IMG/VR virus record: IMGVR_UViG_3300010403_000705
Coordinates: 368,845 to 432,844 of that record
Length of the DNA: 64,000 nt
Direction: 5' to 3' (one strand)
The notes beneath the pieces were generated by a model that did no database searches, was not told the DNA's origin, and worked only from the letters and a program-made list of their open reading frames with translations. A program made the position numbers and the translations under genes. Positions 4,679-59,794 of the stretch are shown here, piece after piece. Numbering within the stretch: position 1 is the first letter of the stretch; every line of letters begins with the position of its first letter.

Positions 4679-4762
4679 GGGCAGGTGGCGAAACTGGTAG
4701 ACGCAGCGTGCTTAAAACTCGCCGGATTAATCTCCGTAAGGGTTCGAATCCCTTCTTGCCCA
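4679..4762 (+). tRNA. tRNA-Leu(TAA)
   Basis: Cloverleaf, anticodon loop CTTAAAA, long variable arm, GGTTCGAATCC; CCA not encoded. Confidence 0.9.
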
Positions 4763-6833: not shown

Positions 6834-7433
6834 ATGACGACAGTAAAATGCAGTGAATTTGTTAAAAGACAAACAGCAAATTCTGGGTATTCTCATTTTG
6901 AAGGTTCATGGGAGGAATTAGAAAAAATAACAGAACAATATTTAAATGATAGTTCCAATATTTACATCAGACCTGGGTATAGAGATGGTGTAATTATAAT
7001 AGATTTACCAGGGGAAAAATTTAGATCAGCCATTGTAAAATTGGATGAAAAATCTAAAATCTATGCTAATTATAACCCACGTAGATTAGGGGAAGATCCT
7101 TACATAAAAATTTCTGTAAAATCTAATAAACAAATTGCTGCCTACGCTTCCGTGGTTCTATATAGATCTGATGTTTTATTAGAAGATAATGATCGATCTT
7201 CTAGTGCAGATTGGGAAATTATAGCTATCAAAGCTAGAATGACTGAAGAAGAGCCGATGAATCCTTATACAATGGCAAGAAATTTTTTGCACCTAACTGG
7301 AGGAACAAAAGGCGATTTTACTGCCGAACAATTTGCAAAGTCTATTATATATTGGAATAATCATTGTATAACTATGAGCAAACAAAAATGGTGGAAACGT
7401 ATCTTAAAATTTTTTAAGGTGATTAATGGGTGA
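6834..7433 (+). CDS. DUF3228-like protein
   Basis: VVLYRSDVL...DWEIIAIKA...EEPMNPYTMARNFL...GG pattern. Confidence 0.55.
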   Translation: MTTVKCSEFVKRQTANSGYSHFEGSWEELEKITEQYLNDSSNIYIRPGYRDGVIIIDLPGEKFRSAIVKLDEKSKIYANYNPRRLGEDPYIKISVKSNKQIAAYASVVLYRSDVLLEDNDRSSSADWEIIAIKARMTEEEPMNPYTMARNFLHLTGGTKGDFTAEQFAKSIIYWNNHCITMSKQKWWKRILKFFKVING

Positions 7434-7995
7434 AGGAATTAAAATTTCAGAAGAACATCGACCATCCATTTTGTCTATTTCCAAAAAATTAGATAGTAAA
7501 ATTAGCAAACAACTACAAAGTTTTTTTATTATTGATTTACAAAACGATTGCAATTGTAGTATTGAAAATTACGATGCAGAGATAGATTGTACAATAGCCT
7601 ATTTATCTACTAGCGGTGTTAAATACTACAATAGTTCTCATTGTCTTGCTTTACCCATGCTGAGCGAAATTTGTGATCAAGATATTTTGAATTTATTGCA
7701 AGAAGCAGGTACAACGTCTTCTGGTGTGTCTAATATAGATTGTTTGCCAACCAACATGCTTTTTAATATAGAAAATGATAGCGATCAGGTGTGGTCAATA
7801 TATAAAAAATATACAAAACAATATGTTCCTTCTATTAATAGAGCATTTATTAATGGGGTATTTGGTGCTGATTTTGTTCCAAAAAATCAGATTTGGTTTA
7901 TGCCACAGCCAGAATTTTTTGGCTGTATTTCAGTGAACATAGATAAATTTGGAGTTTTTTGTTTACCTCAACAAATCTTCAAGATTGGAATTTAA
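7426..7995 (+). CDS. Hypothetical protein, possibly a degenerate capsid-protein paralog
   Basis: 189 aa; VPKNQIWFMPQPEFFGCI recalls a capsid-protein C-terminal strand motif (from memory). Confidence 0.5.
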   Translation: MGEGIKISEEHRPSILSISKKLDSKISKQLQSFFIIDLQNDCNCSIENYDAEIDCTIAYLSTSGVKYYNSSHCLALPMLSEICDQDILNLLQEAGTTSSGVSNIDCLPTNMLFNIENDSDQVWSIYKKYTKQYVPSINRAFINGVFGADFVPKNQIWFMPQPEFFGCISVNIDKFGVFCLPQQIFKIGI

Positions 7996-8238
7996 ATGTT
8001 TAAAATGAAATTATTTTTATTGTTATTATTATCCTTATGTGCTTGTTCACGTTTTTATGCTAGCCAACAAGCAACGACATGGGCTAAATCAAATGGAATC
8101 AATACGTTTTCTATTTTTTGTGATACGAAAGAAAACATAAATTATCATAGTTGTACATTAACATATCCCTTGCCCGGTAATGTGATTGTGTCACAGGCAT
8201 TAATTTGTAATTCTGAATCTTGTGTTGAGGTAAAATAA
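7996..8238 (+). CDS. Small lipoprotein
   Basis: Hydrophobic N-terminus with LCAC lipobox-like site. Confidence 0.6.
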   Translation: MFKMKLFLLLLLSLCACSRFYASQQATTWAKSNGINTFSIFCDTKENINYHSCTLTYPLPGNVIVSQALICNSESCVEVK

Positions 8239-11874: not shown

Positions 11875-12276
11875 ATGAGACAAGCAGCAGTAATGTTAAT
11901 TATTAAAGAAGGACTAATTTTAGGCGTGAGCCGTCGCCTTGATCCAAATAAATTTGGACTCCCTGGTGGTAAATTAGAGGACAATGAATTTCCAATTGAT
12001 GCAGCAATTAGGGAAACTTTTGAAGAGACTGGGGTAAAAGTAAGTTCTGCTTCTTTTCTTTATGAAAGAATAGAGCCGCCGGGATCACCAGATGGTTATG
12101 CTTTTCAAACATATTGTTATTACGCTGATAGTTGGTCTGGTGAAGCTTCAAAACTTGAAGAGAGTGAAGTTAAATGGGTGACAGAAAATGAATTAGCTTC
12201 TGGTGCTTTTCCAGAGCATAATATTAACACAATTGCAGTATTCAAAACATTATATCCTAATGTTTATATTAAGTAA
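11875..12276 (+). CDS. NUDIX hydrolase
   Basis: GGKLEDNEFPIDAAIRETFEETG Nudix box. Confidence 0.9.
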   Translation: MRQAAVMLIIKEGLILGVSRRLDPNKFGLPGGKLEDNEFPIDAAIRETFEETGVKVSSASFLYERIEPPGSPDGYAFQTYCYYADSWSGEASKLEESEVKWVTENELASGAFPEHNINTIAVFKTLYPNVYIK

Positions 12277-12292
12277 AAAGAAGGAGTTAATA

Positions 12293-12949
12293 ATGAATCG
12301 TCTCTTATATACAATTTTATTTGGTTTGACGTTATATGGATGTGATGCCAGCAAACATATGGAAGATTTGGGTTTTAAAAAAGGTAATGGCGTAGTGGAA
12401 AAAGGAGTAGTAAAATATGATTCTTTAGTTGAAAAAGACGAAATTTGTAATCAGAAGTGGTCAGATTATGAAGCGCAACTGCAAAGACGTGCTGATTTAA
12501 TTCCTATGTTAGTTGAGACTGCTAAAGGTTTTGCGACCCATGAACAAGATACTCTTCGTCAAGTGATTGAAGCACGTGCTTCTGCTACGCAAATTAAATT
12601 GACCGGCGAAGATTTTACTGATCCAGTCAAGATGGAAGAATTTCAAAAAGCTCAAAGTCAAATGAAAGGATCCTTATCTCGTTTAATGATGGTAGAAGAA
12701 AAATATCCAGATTTAAAAAGTGATAAACATTTCCATGATTTAATGATTCAAATGGAAGGCACCGAAAATAGGATTCTGCGCTCCCGACAAGAGTATAATA
12801 AAGCTGTAATGGAATTTAATTTAGAATTGCGTCGTATTAGCGGTAAAGCAATTAACCCAATCACAGGGTTTGAATTCAAACCACGTGTATTCTTTACTGC
12901 TGATGAAAGTTCTAAAACTGCTCCTAAAATTGATTTTTCTAAAAAATAA
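12293..12949 (+). CDS. lemA: LemA family lipoprotein
   Basis: QLQRRADLIP, YPDLKS, EGTENRI; lipobox LYGC; SD AAGGAG before ATG 12293. Confidence 0.88.
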   Translation: MNRLLYTILFGLTLYGCDASKHMEDLGFKKGNGVVEKGVVKYDSLVEKDEICNQKWSDYEAQLQRRADLIPMLVETAKGFATHEQDTLRQVIEARASATQIKLTGEDFTDPVKMEEFQKAQSQMKGSLSRLMMVEEKYPDLKSDKHFHDLMIQMEGTENRILRSRQEYNKAVMEFNLELRRISGKAINPITGFEFKPRVFFTADESSKTAPKIDFSKK

Positions 12950-14660: not shown

Positions 14661-14778
14661 GGAGCGATGGCGGAATTGATATACGCAAGCGGTAAAAAAC
14701 AGTGTATGATTTTTTTACCGCTTAATTAGTATAATACACTATACTAATTTATAGGTTTGACTCCTATTCGCTCCACCA
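14661..14778 (+). ncRNA. tRNA-shell RNA with two long complementary-loop hairpins
   Basis: GGAGCGA/TCGCTCC-ACCA, Leu-like D arm, T arm ATAGG-TTTGACT-CCTAT; 13-bp and 10-bp hairpins replace the anticodon and variable arms. Confidence 0.75.
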
Positions 14779-15847: not shown

Positions 15848-16459
15848 GTGGATTCCTTGATTATGCAAGTTTTAAAATTAATTGATAGTCATCCGCTCAA
15901 ATCAAGATTAAGTTATGAAGTGGGTTTTGGTGGCGCAGATGGACAAGTATTTCAACACTTAACTGATAAAGAAAAAGTAATTAAAATATCTGTAGTTTAT
16001 GAACATGCGATTCCAGTTGAAAAGCAAATTTCAAACACATTTCAGGTATTAGAATACTTAAAGTTATATAAACCAGACGCGTACGCGCATGTGTATGAAT
16101 TTGATATAATCAAAAATTATTATCGTGATACTATTTCAGGTGTGCAAAAATATATTGTATACTATTACATAATGGATAAATGCAATCCTTTAACAGAAGA
16201 TGAAAAAAAAGTATTTCACACAATTGTATCACATGAAGATAAATTAAAAAATAAAAGTCCCGTACCAGCATTACATGTTCTAGATGATTTAAGTATGGGT
16301 TTGGATTTTGATTTGTCAAAAATTATAAAATTCTGTCAAACAATTAATTGTTTGCCGATCCAGCATTTAGATATTCATCCGAGAAATATTATGAAAAATA
16401 AATTAGGAGATTTTTGTCTTATTGATTTTGATCGTTGTGAACTAAGAAAGGAAATATAA
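15848..16459 (+). CDS. Protein kinase/APH-like phosphotransferase
   Basis: GFGGADG loop, VIKI, HLDIHPRNIM, IDFD. Confidence 0.75.
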   Translation: MDSLIMQVLKLIDSHPLKSRLSYEVGFGGADGQVFQHLTDKEKVIKISVVYEHAIPVEKQISNTFQVLEYLKLYKPDAYAHVYEFDIIKNYYRDTISGVQKYIVYYYIMDKCNPLTEDEKKVFHTIVSHEDKLKNKSPVPALHVLDDLSMGLDFDLSKIIKFCQTINCLPIQHLDIHPRNIMKNKLGDFCLIDFDRCELRKEI

Positions 16460-16462
16460 ATA

Positions 16463-16771
16463 GTGTCAAAAATAGATAAATTACCAAAAGTAGATTTAGT
16501 GTTACTAAAACAATTAGTTACAGAACTAGAAAATAGTCTAGAGATTTGTGAGAAAATTAAAAATGACGACAATTTCGATCATACAAAATTCATAATTGAA
16601 ATGTCAAAATCCACCGGACTTATAGCTGGTATTATACAAGAAAGTTCAATGTTAATAGGTGACACCCAAACTATTGTAAAAGCAAGTCAGCAACCAAGTT
16701 CTAAGAACACCGACTTTATTGATAAGATATTATCGGGTGGATTAAAAGGTTCTGGCGGTTCAACAAATTAA
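16463..16771 (+). CDS. Hypothetical protein
   Basis: 102 aa ORF in the run. Confidence 0.65.
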   Translation: MSKIDKLPKVDLVLLKQLVTELENSLEICEKIKNDDNFDHTKFIIEMSKSTGLIAGIIQESSMLIGDTQTIVKASQQPSSKNTDFIDKILSGGLKGSGGSTN

Positions 16772-29319: not shown

Positions 29320-30150
29320 ATGATAAAAAGAGATGGTGTTAAGTTAATGAATGCAAGAACTAATAACGTTTCTATTGCCAAAGAAACGCTGGCTATTTTG
29401 AAACAAAAATATTATAATTCTCCCAATGGTAACAAAATAAATATTTCTGAAGCATTGGATGCCGCTGTTAAAGGATCTGTTCTTTATCAAAATGAAATAA
29501 GTTTTGTTGAAAATGAGTCGGTAAAATTACCATTAATAGAAGTTACTCCTGAAACAACTGCTCAAGCAGCACAACGATTATTATGTATACATAAAGATGT
29601 AGTAGTTTTAAATTTTGCTTCTGCTAGAAATCCAGGCGGTGGATTTTTATCTGGTGCTATAGCACAAGAAGAAGATTTATGTCGCTGTTCTGGATTATAT
29701 TCTTGTCTTAAATCTAAGCCAATTTTTTATAATGAAAATATATTATGTGATAATACATATTATACAGATAATATTATTTACTCACCAAATGTTCCATTTT
29801 TTAGAAGCGAACATTTTTTATTTTTAGAAAATCCATTTTGTGTTTCTGTTATAACTGCTCCAGCACCTAATATTAGAGGTATGAATAATATCGATGAAAA
29901 ACAATTATTTGATGTATTGAGTAATAGAATATCTAAAATATTAAAAATTGCTGCATATCATAATCATAAAAATATTATTTTGGGCGCATTTGGATGTGGA
30001 GCATTTGGTAATGATCCATTAATGGTTGCACATATTTTTTTAAATTCTTTGAAAATGTTTAATTATTTTGGAAATGTATGTTTTGCTATTTATTCTAATA
30101 AAGGAGATTTAACTAATTTAAATGCATTTAAAAAAATATTTGATAAATGA
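29320..30150 (+). CDS. TIGR02452 family microbial-type PARG / macrodomain
   Basis: LNFASARNPGGGFLSGAIAQEEDLCRCS, LGAFGCGAFGNDP. Confidence 0.88.
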   Translation: MIKRDGVKLMNARTNNVSIAKETLAILKQKYYNSPNGNKINISEALDAAVKGSVLYQNEISFVENESVKLPLIEVTPETTAQAAQRLLCIHKDVVVLNFASARNPGGGFLSGAIAQEEDLCRCSGLYSCLKSKPIFYNENILCDNTYYTDNIIYSPNVPFFRSEHFLFLENPFCVSVITAPAPNIRGMNNIDEKQLFDVLSNRISKILKIAAYHNHKNIILGAFGCGAFGNDPLMVAHIFLNSLKMFNYFGNVCFAIYSNKGDLTNLNAFKKIFDK

Positions 30151-32216: not shown

Positions 32217-32244
32217 TCGACAATTACTAAATTGGTGTTATAGT
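32217..32244 (+). promoter_or_regulatory. Sigma70-like promoter upstream of the tRNA array
   Basis: TCGACA-N16-TATAGT with upstream A-tract; same GGTG pre -10 segment as at 49067. Confidence 0.5.
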
Positions 32245-32481: not shown

Positions 32482-32558
32482 GGAGGAGTAGCTCAGTGAA
32501 AGAGCACGATGCTATAAACATAACGAGGTCCTTGGTTCAAGTCCAAGCTCTTCCACCA
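32482..32558 (+). ncRNA. tRNA-like RNA, bulged anticodon stem (nominal anticodon ATA)
   Basis: Intact acceptor, D and T arms and CCA; anticodon arm CGATG-CTATAAA-CAT-AA-CG. Confidence 0.65.
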
Positions 32559-33787: not shown

Positions 33788-33952
33788 ATGTGTGATATTT
33801 GTAATGATGATTCTTTAAATGAAAGCTTCGTTGAAGAACAGAATTTTAAATTCTGGCAACGTTTGAAAAATAAATTAAGCGAAGAAGATTTAGAAAAGAT
33901 GTATCCTAATAAGAATAATGTTGTCATTAAACGTAATGATGATTATCAATAA
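33788..33952 (+). CDS. Small hypothetical protein
   Basis: MCDICN... Confidence 0.4.
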   Translation: MCDICNDDSLNESFVEEQNFKFWQRLKNKLSEEDLEKMYPNKNNVVIKRNDDYQ

Positions 33953-33953
33953 T

Positions 33954-34027
33954 TGGAATATCGTCCAACGGCAGGACAACGGGCTTTGAACCCGTGAATC
34001 TAGGTTCGAATCCTAGTATTCCAGCCA
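33954..34027 (+). tRNA. tRNA-Gln(TTG)
   Basis: U1-A72, loop CTTTGAA, G73, CCA. Confidence 0.93.
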
Positions 34028-34030
34028 ACT

Positions 34031-34246
34031 ATGAGTAGGCTTAAAAGGATAAATATGTCAATAAAAAATGCTGATGAATTGATTGATTTATTTAAAAATA
34101 AATTAAATAAACCATCATTGAAGAAAGACGTACAAATTCTTAAAGAAAGCATAAAGATTATATATGAAGATAAAAATTCAAACAATGAAATTAAAGAGAA
34201 AGCATTGTTAAGTCTACAATATTTACAAGAAAAAACAGAGAACTAA
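34031..34246 (+). CDS. Hypothetical protein
   Basis: 71 aa between RNA genes. Confidence 0.5.
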   Translation: MSRLKRINMSIKNADELIDLFKNKLNKPSLKKDVQILKESIKIIYEDKNSNNEIKEKALLSLQYLQEKTEN

Positions 34247-34255
34247 TTGTTCTTA

Positions 34256-34364
34256 AGCAAGAATAGTTTAATGGTAGAACGCTGGAGTCCATCCAGAAGC
34301 GGTACAAAAAGAATCCACGTGCACTGGGTAAAAAAATTCTTAGGTTCAAATCCTCCTTCTTGCT
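34256..34364 (+). ncRNA. tRNA-shell RNA with enlarged variable region
   Basis: AGCAAGAA/TTCTTGCT, D arm TAGTTTAATGGTAGAAC, CTGGA-GTCCA-TCCAG, ~45-nt insert, AGGTTCAAATCCT. Confidence 0.6.
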
Positions 34365-34365
34365 C

Positions 34366-34435
34366 TATGACGAATGCTAAAATGGGATTACATTTAATTT
34401 ACAAAAACATATCTCATTTAATTTTTGTCGTCATA
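34366..34435 (+). ncRNA. Hairpin RNA, Y-RNA candidate
   Basis: TATGACGA/TCGTCATA and AAATGGGAT/ATCTCATTT stems; 5' strand contains GACGAATG. Confidence 0.35.
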
Positions 34436-34441
34436 ATATTT

Positions 34442-34548
34442 GGGTACGTACCTCAAATATGGATGAGGATCGGAGCGGGGGCGAATTGGTAAAATATTAG
34501 CTAGTCCCGAGCACTCTAAAGTTGTTGGTTCAAATTCAATCGTATCCA
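34442..34548 (+). ncRNA. tRNA-shell RNA with extended bulged anticodon-position stem and G3:U70
   Basis: GGGTACG/CGTATCC-A, CCTC/GAGG D stem, GTTGG-TTCAAAT-TCAAT T arm; ~55-nt central domain. Confidence 0.65.
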
Positions 34549-34669
34549 CTTAGATTTTATGTTCCCTGAAAAAGTATACCCGTTAGTTTGGGCGGAGAAC
34601 ACTATAGCTGAATGCAGATAGGTTTACATCGGAAAAAAATAGACTTATCAAATTTTGTCAGCTTAATAT

Positions 34670-34744
34670 AGAGTAATAGTTTAATGTAAAGAATAGCCTC
34701 ATTAACAGAGGAAGATTTTGGTTTAAATCCAAATTACTCTACCA
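34670..34744 (+). ncRNA. Atypical tRNA (nominal anticodon TAA, short variable loop)
   Basis: AGAGTAA/TTACTCT-ACCA, loop ATTAACA, T-loop TTTAAAT. Confidence 0.6.
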
Positions 34745-34752
34745 CCTATAAT

Positions 34753-34838
34753 GCCGACGTTGAGCAGGTGGTGGGCTCAGTGCGCTGTAAACGCATATCC
34801 TTAAGGACTTGGAGGTTCGATTCCTCTCGGCGGCACCA
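34753..34838 (+). tRNA. tRNA-Tyr(GTA)
   Basis: Loop CTGTAAA, variable arm, CCA. Confidence 0.88.
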
Positions 34839-34964
34839 AGATAAAATTATTTTTATTTGGGGTATAATTAGGTATAACTATAACAAGTTGTAAGAACAAT
34901 ATTTAACTCACTACCGCAATTAAATATTGTACAGACTAAATCTAGCGGTGTTATTAGAGGTTTT

Positions 34965-35393
34965 ATGATAAAGATCAAGAAACTTGAAAAAATAGAAACC
35001 AATCAAATGGGTGATAATTATCTTGACCATTTAGTAACTGTTGATATAGATAGTATTACACATAGAGTTTGGGTAAGTTGTAGTGGTTCTCTAATGCGTA
35101 CCGAGAAGAAATCTTTAAAAGATGTAAGTAAGTTTATCAATGATAAATTAGAAAAGTCATTATATAATGATATCAGTTTTGAACATTGGTTAGGAAATCA
35201 AGGAGATTATGCTGCTCCGTATGTTGTGTTAAAAGCAGGCAATGTTGATAAGGTAGTAGATGATGAGTGTTTTTATCATGAATACCCACGTTTGATATTC
35301 ACTACTCCACCACCTCCTCCAGCAGAACCAAAACAGAAACCAACGAATACTATTAATGACGAAATTAAAAAATCAATTATTAATGTAACTTAA
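34965..35393 (+). CDS. Hypothetical protein with polyproline tract
   Basis: 142 aa; SD GAGG; TPPPPPAEP. Confidence 0.65.
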   Translation: MIKIKKLEKIETNQMGDNYLDHLVTVDIDSITHRVWVSCSGSLMRTEKKSLKDVSKFINDKLEKSLYNDISFEHWLGNQGDYAAPYVVLKAGNVDKVVDDECFYHEYPRLIFTTPPPPPAEPKQKPTNTINDEIKKSIINVT

Positions 35394-35435: not shown

Positions 35436-35508
35436 CGGGAATAAAGTGTAGCCTGGTTGCACACGTCGTTTGGGGCGATGTAGGGTGGTTCAAATCCAAT
35501 ATTCCCGA
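35436..35508 (+). tRNA. tRNA-Pro(TGG), 8/4-like
   Basis: CGGGAATA/TATTCCCG, loop TTTGGGG. Confidence 0.8.
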
Positions 35509-36227: not shown

Positions 36228-36300
36228 CAGAATATGTGGTCTAAGGGCAGGGCAGGTGGAAGTGTTCATCACGTTCAGGTTCGATTCCTGACATATTCTG
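36228..36300 (+). ncRNA. tRNA-like RNA with shrunken anticodon loop
   Basis: CAGAATATG/CATATTCTG, TCAGG-TTCGATT-CCTGA; loop of 4-6 nt; no CCA. Confidence 0.6.
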
Positions 36301-36385: not shown

Positions 36386-36494
36386 TGTAATTAAGTGTAA
36401 TGGTGCATCATCTCGATAATGATACGTACGTTCAATTCGTACACTTCCAGTCGGATATAGTAGAGAGAAAAAGGTTCGATTCCTTTAATTACAA
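36386..36494 (+). ncRNA. tRNA-shell RNA with a nested second T-arm
   Basis: TGTAATT/AATTACA, D arm, TCTC/GAGA enclosing GTACG-TTCAATT-CGTAC, outer AAAGG-TTCGATT-CCTTT. Confidence 0.65.
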
Positions 36495-38330: not shown

Positions 38331-38579
38331 GCGATTGTGGTGAAAGAGGAAAACACACCATCAAAAATGTTAAAAGAAGATGGCATATTAAAAATGGCAT
38401 CATAGTATTTTTTAATATAAGCTTTATAAGGTGATGCCTAGGAAAGATATATTTATAAAATATGTAACGGGTTTGCGGAAGCACCGGACAGGGTTTTGAC
38501 AAGTTCTGTAGGGAAGCGCGTTTGCCTAATAGTTATAGTGTGATGTTATATACGGGTTCAAATCCCGTCAATCGCACCA
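38331..38579 (+). ncRNA. 249-nt tRNA-shell RNA with pseudoknotted insert
   Basis: GCGATTG/CAATCGC-ACCA, D arm, ACGGG-TTCAAAT-CCCGT; ~190-nt structured insert. Confidence 0.75.
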
Positions 38580-47070: not shown

Positions 47071-47438
47071 ATATAGTTGGTTAAGATAATCGCTGCCAAT
47101 TTTAATTGGGAGAGGAAGTTCCGAACACCAATAAAGCAGAGTGCCAGTTAACGGCTGGGTGCAGTGATGCAACTGAAAGTGTAACAGAAAATAAACCGCC
47201 TGTAAAGGTAAGGGTGAAATGGTGAAAAATGGCGAACTAAGAGTGCGCCATGTGTAAGAGACCACCGCATATTTGGTAACAAATATGGCAATACAAACCA
47301 CACTCGGTGCAAGACAAATAGAAAACGTTTGAGAATCGCTTATTCGATGTTTTCGGGTTGTTGCTTGATCCAAATAGTGATATTTGGACTAGATTAATGA
47401 TTATCCTAGACAGAATTCGGGCTACTTATTAACTATAT
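47071..47438 (+). ncRNA. rnpB: RNase P RNA (bacterial type A-like)
   Basis: GAGGAAGTTCCG(AAC), GAAAGTGTAACAGAAA, AGGGTGAAA, GTGCAAGAC, ACAGAATTCGGGCTA; P1 ATATAGTTGGT/ATTAACTATAT. Confidence 0.92.
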
Positions 47439-47472
47439 TTCTTTTATAAAAGTTATCTAAAACATCAATACC

Positions 47473-54212: not shown

Positions 54213-54286
54213 AGGTGTCTGGTGTAACGGCAACATAACTGTTTCCAACTCAGTAGATACGGGTTCAATTCCTGTGACATCTGCCA
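54213..54286 (+). tRNA. tRNA-Trp(CCA)
   Basis: Loop TTCCAAC, G73, CCA. Confidence 0.88.
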
Positions 54287-57712: not shown

Positions 57713-59794
57713 ATGAAACCTACAAACTTGTCTATAGAAAAATTTAGAAATATTGGTATTATGGCACATATTGATGCTGGTAAAACAACAGTATCAGAGC
57801 GCATATTATTTTATAGTGGACGTATTCATTCTATGGGTGAAGTTCATAACGGTGATACTGTTATGGATGATGATCCTCTTGAAATGAAGCACGGCATCAC
57901 CATTAATTCGGCTGCCACCACTGTGTTTTGGGGCAAAGGTGGAGATATCTATCGTATTAATTTGATTGATACACCTGGTCACATTGATTTTACAGTTGAA
58001 GTTGAAAGATCATTAAGAGTGCTTGATGGTGCTGTATGTGTTCTTGACGGATCCCAAGGTGTTGAACCGCAAACAGAACAAGTATGGAGACAAGCTGATA
58101 AATATAATGTTACTCGTATAATTTTTGTTAATAAGATGGATAAAGTTGGTGCCAGTTTTCAAATGTCTTTGGATTCTTTAAAAGAAAAATTGGGCATTAA
58201 ACCTGTAGCCATTCAATTGCCGGCAGGTGAAGAAGATAAATTCAAAGGTATTTATGATCTGGTTAACATGAAATTAATTTCTTTTGATGAGAAATCTTTA
58301 GGAAGACAATATGATATTTCGGAAATTCCTCTTTCTGCTTTGGAAGAAGTCAAGGCTGCCAGGAATCAAATGATTGAGTCGTTAGCCGATGTTAGTGATT
58401 CTATTATGGAAAAATTTTTGGAGGGTAACCTGAGCGCTATTTCGATTGATGAGATTAAAATTGCTCTTCGTAAAGGTACTATCAACAGAGATTTATATCC
58501 AGTCATGTGTGGATCCGCTCTTCGTAACAAGGGAGTTCAAATGTTATTGGATGCAATAATAGATTATTTACCTTCTCCCATTGATCTGCCAGCTATAGCT
58601 GCGTTATCTAGTACAACAGGTGAAATGTTAAATTTCAAACCAGAAGCTAATGAAAAATTAGCTGCCCTATCTTTTAAGGTCGTTAATGATAAAAATGGTG
58701 ATCTTACATTCATTAGAATTTATTCTGGAACTTTAAGTGCTGGAAGTGTGGTATTTAACTCTACTCGACAACATACAGAACGTATTTCAAAATTGGTTTT
58801 GGTTCATGCTTCAAATAAGAATGAAGAAATAAAATCAGCCGGACCAGGAACTATTGTTGCGGCAGTTGGATTAAAAAATACTTTTACTGGAGACACGTTG
58901 TGTGAAAAGAAAAATCCAATTACCTTGGAGAAGATGGAATTTCCAGAACCAGTAGTAGAATTATCTGTGGAACCAAAAACTAATGCTGACCAAGATAAAT
59001 TATCAGCCGGCTTACAGAAAATGCTTTTATCAGATCCCTCATTGAAAGCGGGTACCAATATTGAAACCGGGCAAACTGTCCTAAAAGGTATGGGCGAGCT
59101 TCATTTGGAGATTGTAGTTGAACGTTTGAAAAGCGTGCATGGTGTTGATGTTAATACTGGTAAACCACAAGTTTCCTATAAAGAAACTATCACTAAGTCA
59201 AGCCAAGCAGATTATAAGTATGTTCGACAATCAGGTGGTAGAGGTCAATATGGTCATGTAGTAATTACTATTACTCCTGCTCCTAGAGGATCTGGATTGA
59301 TTTTTGTTAATGATATTGTAGGAGGAACTATTCCAAAAGAATATGTTCCTGCTGTTGAGAAAGGTATTAAAGGAGCCATGGAAAAAGGTGTATTAGCTGA
59401 TTATCCAGTCGTAGATGTAGAAGTACATCTTGTAGATGGAAGCTATCATAATGTAGACTCAAGTACCAATGCATTCGAAATTGCTGGCTCATTGGCTTTT
59501 CAACAAGCTGCAAAGGGTGCTGGAATGGTTATTTTAGAACCAATTATGGCATTAGAAATTGTAACTCCAGAACAATTTATGGGAGATGTAATTGGTACTG
59601 TTTCATCTAGAGGTGGACATATTAAAGATTCTACTATTAGAGGTAATGCTAGAGTGCTTTCAGCTCAAATGCCATTGAGAAATTTATTTGGTTATACTAC
59701 CGAGCTTCGTGGTAGAACTCAAGGCAGAGCCACACCCTCAGCAATTTTTTCTCACTATGAAGTATGTAATCTAAAATTATCTGAACTGAAATGA
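57713..59794 (+). CDS. fusA: Elongation factor G
   Basis: RNIGIMAHIDAGKTT, DTPGHIDF, NKMD, GMGELHL, QSGGRGQYGHV, SYHNVDSS. Confidence 0.95.
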   Translation: MKPTNLSIEKFRNIGIMAHIDAGKTTVSERILFYSGRIHSMGEVHNGDTVMDDDPLEMKHGITINSAATTVFWGKGGDIYRINLIDTPGHIDFTVEVERSLRVLDGAVCVLDGSQGVEPQTEQVWRQADKYNVTRIIFVNKMDKVGASFQMSLDSLKEKLGIKPVAIQLPAGEEDKFKGIYDLVNMKLISFDEKSLGRQYDISEIPLSALEEVKAARNQMIESLADVSDSIMEKFLEGNLSAISIDEIKIALRKGTINRDLYPVMCGSALRNKGVQMLLDAIIDYLPSPIDLPAIAALSSTTGEMLNFKPEANEKLAALSFKVVNDKNGDLTFIRIYSGTLSAGSVVFNSTRQHTERISKLVLVHASNKNEEIKSAGPGTIVAAVGLKNTFTGDTLCEKKNPITLEKMEFPEPVVELSVEPKTNADQDKLSAGLQKMLLSDPSLKAGTNIETGQTVLKGMGELHLEIVVERLKSVHGVDVNTGKPQVSYKETITKSSQADYKYVRQSGGRGQYGHVVITITPAPRGSGLIFVNDIVGGTIPKEYVPAVEKGIKGAMEKGVLADYPVVDVEVHLVDGSYHNVDSSTNAFEIAGSLAFQQAAKGAGMVILEPIMALEIVTPEQFMGDVIGTVSSRGGHIKDSTIRGNARVLSAQMPLRNLFGYTTELRGRTQGRATPSAIFSHYEVCNLKLSELK

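Follow-up and report, generated by a model that had tools for sequence, protein, structure and literature searches.

We identified in a phage genome a 107-nucleotide (nt) gene that has the acceptor stem, D arm, and T arm of a tRNA and carries 38 nt in place of the 7-nt anticodon loop. The explanation that we tentatively prefer, from its sequence and its neighborhood, is that this element is a non-decoding tRNA relic that would be kept as a handle for RNase P and 3'-end processing. By itself, the element is a modest finding that adds another non-decoding tRNA-like gene to those of phage arrays, and it is probably ordinary to moderately interesting, with surroundings that are more novel. The setting that it revealed holds a phage Ro60, a covarying hairpin RNA, fusions of that RNA to tRNA bodies, and a phage RNase P RNA.

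The element has tRNA arms and a replaced anticodon loop

The window is a stretch of 64,000 nt at the end of an IMG/VR record of 432,844 bp, which is 97% complete and derives from a 447,633-bp soil metagenome contig; phage origin is backed by PHROG matches. We numbered the element so that nt n is window position 34441+n (Table 1). The element is present in a single copy in the genome. A sequence-only reading of this DNA had reported an acceptor stem with G3:U70 and A73, and these can be read directly, with seven of seven acceptor pairs formed. Its statement that there is no anticodon loop also held, since 38 nt stand in for the 7-nt loop, and the long bulged central stem that it described was reproduced by the minimum-energy fold, which consists of a cloverleaf, a bulged GGAG/CUCU helix, a GGGGC/GUCCC helix, and a weak apical hairpin. 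The D arm, the T arm, and the 4-nt variable loop were absent from that description.

The element has the acceptor, D, and T arms expected of a tRNA, including U8, G18G19, and a T loop of the UUCRA type. The T arm contains two G.U pairs, among them G53.U61 in place of the usual G53-C61. A 5-bp stem topped by a 7-nt anticodon loop with U33 is missing, and the 5' part of the loop region contains no U. The stem at the anticodon position is formed by U-A, C.A, G.U, G-C, and A-U, plus a further G-C, and thus includes one C.A mismatch. Position -1 is U, and CCA is not encoded at the 3' end, where the trailer is CUU. The canonical CCA-less phage tRNAs at 4679-4762 and 35436-35508 have the same A-CUU or A-CUA 3' context.

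Folding energy did not distinguish the element from shuffled sequences (z of -1.14 for the whole element). For the 50-nt extended arm alone, z was -0.51 and 64 of 200 shuffles folded as well, while comparable arms and hairpins in relatives gave z values of -2.1 to -3.4. The extended arm is not selected for stability. The element is beyond chance by architecture and place, not by energy, because a fully paired acceptor is combined with T and D arms at tRNA spacing, and because the gene shares its strand with the tRNA array and lies 9 nt past a conserved hairpin RNA, a place at which ordinary tRNAs are found in relatives.

TABLE 1 Positions of the element, its parts, and related features (window coordinates unless a contig or genome label is given; (-) marks the minus strand)
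Feature	Position	Strand	Evidence or detail
tRNA-like RNA gene (the element), 107 nt	34442-34548	+	Sequence, cloverleaf-like minimum-energy fold, tRNA-shape scans
Element acceptor stem	34442-34448 / 34541-34547	+	GGGUACG (nt 1-7) with CGUAUCC (nt 100-106), 7/7 paired
Element G3:U70 pair	34444:34545	+	Sequence
Element D arm CCUC/GAGG, GG in loop	34451-34468 (nt 10-27)	+	Sequence, fold
Extended "anticodon" arm	34470-34519 (nt 29-78)	+	Fold; 5- to 6-bp stem, then insert
Element 38-nt insert replacing 7-nt loop	34476-34513 (nt 35-72)	+	Sequence
GGCGAA in insert	34480-34485	+	Sequence
Element variable loop AGUU, 4 nt	34520-34523	+	Sequence
Element T arm GUUGG-UUCAAAU-UCAAU	34524-34540 (nt 83-99)	+	Sequence
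Element discriminator A73	34548	+	Sequence
Ro60/Rsr ortholog, 530 aa	26259-27851	+	Pfam vWA_Ro60 65.7 bits, TROVE 26 bits
Likely promoter of tRNA/small-RNA array	32217-32244	+	Best promoter-like site, TCGACA-16-TATAGT with TG
Upstream neighbor, oversize tRNA-like gene, 108 nt	34257-34364	+	Rfam tRNA 38.7 bits, long insertion; fold
Hairpin RNA copy 1, candidate Y RNA, P1 GACGA/UCGUC	34369-34432	+	Covariation, Ro60 linkage, z -2.94
Hairpin RNA copy 2, P1 GCUGA/UCAGC	34607-34662	+	Covariation, z -2.53
Type A bacterial RNase P RNA, full length	47073-47440	+	Rfam RF00010 247.5 bits
Odd tRNA-shaped genes	14661-14775, 32482-32558, 34257-34364, 36229-36300, 36386-36494, 38516-38579	+	
92-nt RNA, D-armless, CCA-encoding	L017:17621-17712 (G028); G003:420954-421045(-)		G3:U70/A73
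Intron-like inserts	L003:15618-15746; L045(-) 7062-7182, 7928-8058; L033:4399-4515; L038(-) 584-683; L034:287-392		

The array has a likely promoter and lies in a genome with processing functions

The genome contains 39 tRNA-model matches above the cutoff. The best promoter-like site lies at the start of the tRNA and small-RNA array, and relatives have equivalent TTGACG or TTGACA sites at their array starts. A scan of 33900-35000 found no promoter or terminator on the + strand. With a promoter-like site at the array start and neither a promoter nor a terminator around the element, a polycistronic precursor is likely. The gene just upstream of hairpin copy 1 is an oversize tRNA-like gene with about 44 extra nt past the anticodon arm, and it ends 4 nt before that hairpin. 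Among public sequencing runs, the locus was found in one DNA run only, a soil metagenome that is the likely source.

The phage encodes RtcB (G000:363250-364554) and a nucleotidyltransferase of the PolyA_pol/CCA type; genome searches found no SmpB and no alanyl-tRNA synthetase (AlaRS). A true tmRNA with the tag ANDNAFVPMAQAA lies outside the window (G000:55645-55997, 110 bits). The RNase P RNA in the window is also found in the three nearest large relatives (G001:58158-58489, G003:411691-412037 on the minus strand, and G023:51723-52066; 280 to 308 bits), whereas nine members of the clade that are more distant lack it. We found no report of a phage-encoded RNase P RNA in the literature. This RNA may be the enzyme that would make the 5' cut at 34442. 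The window also encodes an EF-G-like translation factor (57713-59794, +; phrog_6880, 393 bits) and a microbial PARG (29320-30150, +; 159 bits).

Two copies of a Ro60-linked hairpin RNA flank the element

The phage Ro60 matches the D. radiodurans Rsr (2nvo), the phage phiLo Ro60 (9kop), and the Xenopus Ro60 (1yvp) over the full length. Its gene lies about 6.5 to 6.6 kb upstream of the element on the same strand, which is beyond the approximately 2 kb typical of bacteria. Orthologs with 35 to 81% identity are present in 24 of 29 related contigs.

The two hairpin RNAs that flank the element have a common layout, with a P1 helix NNNGA/UCNNN, an internal loop AUGC / AAUUUUUG, a P2 helix ending in GAU, and a loop starting UUACAU; the internal loop and the start of the loop are the conserved parts. 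Copy 1 ends 9 nt before the element. Copy 2 begins 58 nt past the element, and 7 nt separate its end from the next tRNA (34670-34741). When IMG/VR was scanned with a pattern, 35 different copies turned up in about 30 contigs of large phages, within tRNA arrays, and an nhmmer profile of 33 copies showed that the 433-kb genome holds only the two that flank the element. The hairpins are 56 to 64 nt long in this phage and 55 to 80 nt across copies. The 5-bp P1 has more than 20 different sequences and is always complementary; the 7-bp P2 has 27 different sequences and is fully paired in 29 of the 35 copies. Examples among the 33 further copies are L017:15719-15779, L031:8119-8183, L042:2396-2475(-), and L066:2830-2898.

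A Ro60 ortholog is present in 18 of 23 further hairpin contigs, including all four of those that are at least 90% complete, and the hairpin is on the Ro60 strand in 25 of 25 copies checked. The hairpin lies 42 to 162 nt from the Ro60 open reading frame (ORF) in G005, G012, G018, and G025 and 3 to 8 kb downstream of Ro60 in most other genomes, this phage included. Because of this tight linkage to Ro60 across about 25 related phages, we regard the motif as a strong phage Y RNA candidate. The motif is previously undescribed and has no Rfam model. We rejected assignment to the Rfam YrlA or YrlB families, for which the best score was 19.8 bits (YrlB, E of 1.1) for one copy in a relative. We also rejected a sigma-70 promoter or an intrinsic terminator, since both helices covary, the conserved blocks are spaced with a variation of more than 25 nt, and promoter and terminator scans were silent.

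Many of the 35 copies adjoin tRNAs, starting 0 to 8 nt after one and ending 3 to 9 nt before the next. About half of the copies in relatives have no tRNA within 10 nt downstream, and some stand alone beside Ro60.

Some copies are fused to tRNA parts. A 116-nt RNA beside Ro60 in G012 (L042:2274-2389, minus strand) has a T-arm hairpin inside the closing stem of the motif, and L018:16590-16680 is a further fusion; closing-stem fusions with an internal T-arm hairpin that adjoin Ro60 have a z of -3.2. In G025, two tandem tRNA-likes (L065:12113-12240 and 12250-12372) have a circularly permuted hairpin motif in place of the anticodon loop. These fusions are YrlA-like designs of both topologies.

The slot between the hairpins turns over, and one RNA in sister phages resembles the element

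A blastn search of 50,697 phage records (INPHARED) and BLAST searches of the related genomes found no homolog of the element. An exact 22-mer from the element found nothing in IMG/VR beyond the source contig, and a search of IMG/VR and JGI metagenomes with the neighboring 142-amino-acid ORF found no ortholog of the element beyond that contig. In the closest relatives, G003 and G028, Ro60 is 79 to 81% identical. There is always at least one tRNA-shaped gene between the two hairpins, and it is different each time. In G003, it is a tRNA-Cys, and the slot right after hairpin copy 1 is empty; G028 has a weak 70-nt tRNA (30 bits, borderline), another anticodon-less tRNA-like, and a tRNA-Cys. We considered and rejected orthology of the element with the syntenic gene L017:15786-15862 in G028, as tRNA-Lys genes are at least as close to the body of the element and the correspondence is one of position only.

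Relatedness to the element is limited to the acceptor end of a 92-nt RNA, present once in each of these two phages, that has in common with it the first 5 bp of the acceptor and A73 (GGGUA/UAUCC-A). Within this RNA is an exact GUCGAAAG. Its identity between G003 and G028 is 95%, with flanks of about 73% identity, and it is under purifying selection. By its sequence, it looks like the tRNA-like domain of tmRNA closed by a hairpin. Analogues of the 92-nt RNA are a 60-nt RNA with G3:U70 in G008 (L080) and a 73-nt RNA in G002 (L077).

Other unusual tRNA-like genes occur in the window and in relatives

At least six more genes in the window are tRNA shaped and have no normal 7-nt anticodon loop. Among them are genes with an arm of 13 bp, a bulged arm, an extra segment of 44 nt, a short loop, or an insert of 48 nt that contains a T-loop-like hairpin, as well as a mini form that lacks the D arm. 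Most of these genes are missed or mislabeled by ARAGORN. Defective or odd tRNA-likes are abundant in the arrays of this clade. GNCGAA was observed in 3 to 4 of about 14 odd tRNA-likes versus about 0.7 expected, a marginal and post hoc excess.

Related phages also have otherwise normal tRNAs with intron-like inserts of 26 to 47 nt in the anticodon loop, and removing the insert leaves a canonical loop. A tRNA-Asn in two genomes, G002 and G013, has such an insert between CUGU and UAA, with a covarying stem and a T-loop-like hairpin; similar inserts are present in one probable tRNA-Thr and one tRNA-Pro. We know of no splicing mechanism in bacteria or phages for inserts of this kind in the anticodon loop. 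Homology of the insert in the element to the Asn-type inserts was rejected, since a MAFFT alignment gave about 44% identity, which is not convincing.

A further group of tRNAs has 8-nt anticodon loops (L002:14408-14484 and 16426-16500, L003:15058-15135, and L037), for which ARAGORN gives the four-base anticodons ttaa, tttt, and taaa. Judging from these loops, the tRNAs may be quadruplet or frameshift decoders. The tRNA at 34670-34741 of the window is their counterpart, with the loop AUUAACA.

Alanine identity and comparison with tmRNA

G3:U70 and A73 are the main identity elements recognized by AlaRS, and once CCA had been added, the element could plausibly be charged with alanine. The sequence-only reading had taken G3:U70 as the AlaRS determinant. 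The pair is present; it is less diagnostic here than was assumed, because a tRNA-Trp of the same phage has it as well as the tRNA-Ala. This tRNA-Trp(CCA) (54213-54286, +) combines G3:U70 with G73, a finding that one would not expect if G3:U70 is read by the host AlaRS.

The tRNA-like domain of tmRNA has no D stem, and tmRNA contains a tag reading frame and pseudoknots and works with SmpB. The tmRNA model RF00023, which finds the true tmRNA of this phage, did not match the element. The element does have a D stem, and its 107 nt contain neither an ORF nor any part of a pseudoknot. The sequence-only reading had likewise described the RNA as lacking a tag ORF. Its proposal of a mini-tmRNA-like RNA is not supported, given the full D arm, the result for the tmRNA model, and the genuine tmRNA elsewhere in the genome. 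Its further suggestion of an SmpB or EF-Tu decoy is likewise unsupported, as the phage encodes no SmpB and no AlaRS and has a complete tmRNA. The context points instead to tRNA-type processing in a neighborhood of Ro60 and candidate Y RNAs.

A processing handle and competing explanations

If the element is a processing handle, then transcription from the likely promoter at 32217-32244 would yield the array as a single precursor. RNase P, with the RNA of either the host or the phage, would cut at 34442, and a 3' endonuclease would cut after A 34548, as in other CCA-less phage tRNAs with a CU(U/A) trailer. The two cuts would separate and trim the flanking hairpin RNAs, so that the element would act as a "punctuation" handle. 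The released 107-nt RNA would read no codon. If CCA were added to it, then alanylation through G3:U70 and A73 may occur, which would probably be a relic of its ancestry and not its purpose. This reading is based on the intact processing determinants, the wrecked and unremarkable anticodon region, the placement between small RNAs, and the fast turnover of the slot, and it is in line with the likely polycistronic array and with the processing functions that the phage encodes (RNase P RNA and the CCA-type nucleotidyltransferase). The element lies exactly between two hairpin RNAs, and elsewhere the ends of hairpins coincide with the ends of tRNAs. A handle is not obligatory, as about half of the hairpin copies in relatives have no tRNA close downstream and some are alone beside Ro60. 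Two further observations weigh against the handle reading. The first is GGCGAA, the core of a Ro60-binding motif, in the insert. The second is that the acceptor is common to the 92-nt RNA that is under purifying selection, which hints that the acceptor end itself matters.

It is doubtful that the element is simply a tRNA gene in neutral decay, or two tRNA fragments joined as a chimera, and has no role. The element had no Rfam match at the gathering score (29 bits for RF00005). Below that cutoff, the tRNA model gave 15.2 bits (E of 4.8) in an alternative register, 34477-34548 (nt 36 to 107), where GGGGGCG pairs at six of seven positions with the same 3' acceptor strand and a poor 72-nt cloverleaf forms alone, as a chimera or a decayed gene might have. 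The abundance of defective tRNA-likes in the arrays of the clade, the empty slot in G003 and the borderline tRNA in G028, and the lack of a stability signal in the extended arm are also consistent with neutral decay. However, the acceptor is fully paired and both the D arm and the T arm remain intact, with only the anticodon region disrupted, which is what would be expected if the processing signals were selected, and the 9-nt spacing to the upstream hairpin is precise.

We likewise consider it unlikely that the element is a functional, tRNA-shaped partner of Ro60, a counterpart of YrlA that would end at its acceptor and contact Ro60 through the predicted CGAA arm. In bacteria and in phage phiLo, Ro60 binds the motif GNCGAAN0-1G, or CGAA. 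The frequency of GNCGAA in the window is 45 per 128,000 positions, which gives a P of about 0.012 for its presence in the insert. Like a Y RNA, the element is encoded on the Ro60 strand near the Ro60 gene, and it sits between two candidate Y RNAs. Other members of the clade have tRNA-likes with the permuted Ro60-linked motif for an anticodon loop (L065 in G025) and T-arm-bearing hairpin versions that adjoin Ro60, and the conserved 92-nt RNA of the sister phages combines the same acceptor with the exact GUCGAAAG. The YrlA of M. smegmatis is cut by RNase P and receives CCA. Against a role as a Ro60 partner, the conserved hairpin module of the clade, NNNGA-AUGC ... AAUUUUUG-UCNNN, is missing from the element, to which the nhmmer hairpin profile had no match. 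The GNCGAA of the element has two N before G and is on the 5' strand of the arm, the opposite of YrlA and the 92-nt RNA, and it does not lie near the 5' end in a stem made by both ends, as it does in Y RNAs. The extended arm folds no better than shuffles, Rfam YrlA and YrlB do not match the element, and the searches described above found no ortholog.

A broader version of this idea, which is more doubtful still, is that the element and the 92-nt RNA of the sister phages would form a small family of anticodon-less tRNA-topology Y RNAs with alanine identity, cut by RNase P, tailed with CCA, perhaps alanylated, and bound to Ro60 through the CGAA arm.

It is very unlikely that the element is a tRNA-Ala with a short intron, in which cleavage and RtcB ligation would restore a decoding tRNA. 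ARAGORN made no call on the element at default settings; only with introns allowed and an 80% threshold did it report Ala(AGC), with a noncanonical intron site. A 4+3 junction would produce the loop GCGG-CAC with the anticodon GGC (Ala), consistent with G3:U70, the phage encodes RtcB, and the anticodon-loop inserts in relatives leave canonical loops when removed. However, NGC triplets are easily produced by chance from the G/C-rich flanks. U33 is missing at every possible junction, and the C.A mismatch stays in the anticodon stem. When we removed the insert in silico, ARAGORN still found no tRNA, because C33 and the stem mismatches persist. The insert has no convincing homology to the Asn-type inserts and no BHB motif, and its 38 nt are too short for a group I intron and match no Rfam intron. 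To our knowledge, no bacterial or phage endonuclease acts on introns of this sort.

That the element is a mini-tmRNA-like RNA that is alanylated and titrates SmpB or EF-Tu is highly improbable, as the G3:U70, A73, and T arm that it has in common with the tmRNA tRNA-like domain, together with the D-armless G3:U70 RNAs of relatives (the 92-nt RNA and the 60-nt RNA in G008), stand against a normal D arm, a similarity to the tmRNA model that is limited to the T loop, the absence of a phage SmpB, and a complete phage tmRNA, with which the phage appears to use trans-translation, not block it.

The element shows that a class of tRNA-shaped genes in huge phages escapes gene callers. If such tRNA-like RNAs are Ro60 partners or are aminoacylated, then they would be a tractable viral system for asking why Y RNAs mimic tRNA. 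If the reading as a tRNA-topology Y RNA is true, then a viral Ro60 particle would be linked to aminoacylation or to the translation machinery.

Comparison with known systems

The element is like the tRNA-like domain of tmRNA in its G3:U70, discriminator A, T arm, and lack of an anticodon, and it is unlike tmRNA in being noncoding and in having a D arm.

The mascRNA at the 3' end of MALAT1 and the tRNA-like parts of the murine gammaherpesvirus 68 TMERs are non-decoding, and their recognition by RNase P and RNase Z sets the ends of neighboring RNAs. The element resembles them as a non-decoding, tRNA-shaped module to which CCA might be added without a decoding role. Those systems are eukaryotic or herpesviral, whereas the element lies in a phage tRNA array beside Ro60-linked hairpins and its processing is only predicted.

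YrlA, a Y RNA of bacteria and phages, contains a tRNA-like domain (Chen et al. 2014, PMC4201824). Like YrlA, the element is encoded on the Ro60 strand a few kilobases from the gene and includes a T arm, a D arm, an acceptor-type stem, and, at the position of the anticodon stem, a helix that carries (GN)CGAA. It differs in that YrlA ends in the Ro60-binding stem and its acceptor is closed by a loop, an arrangement that is reversed in the element, and in that the motif of the element is internal, on the other strand, and imperfect (GGCGAA, then UU, then G, with two N and not 0 to 1).

The tRNA arrays of jumbo phages such as XacN1 contain tRNA pseudogenes, or "tRNA-like sequences" (PMC5852040). 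The element resembles these as a defective tRNA gene amid functional phage tRNAs, and it differs from them in that its defect is a 38-nt loop replacement, its processing determinants are intact, and it lies between two conserved small RNAs.
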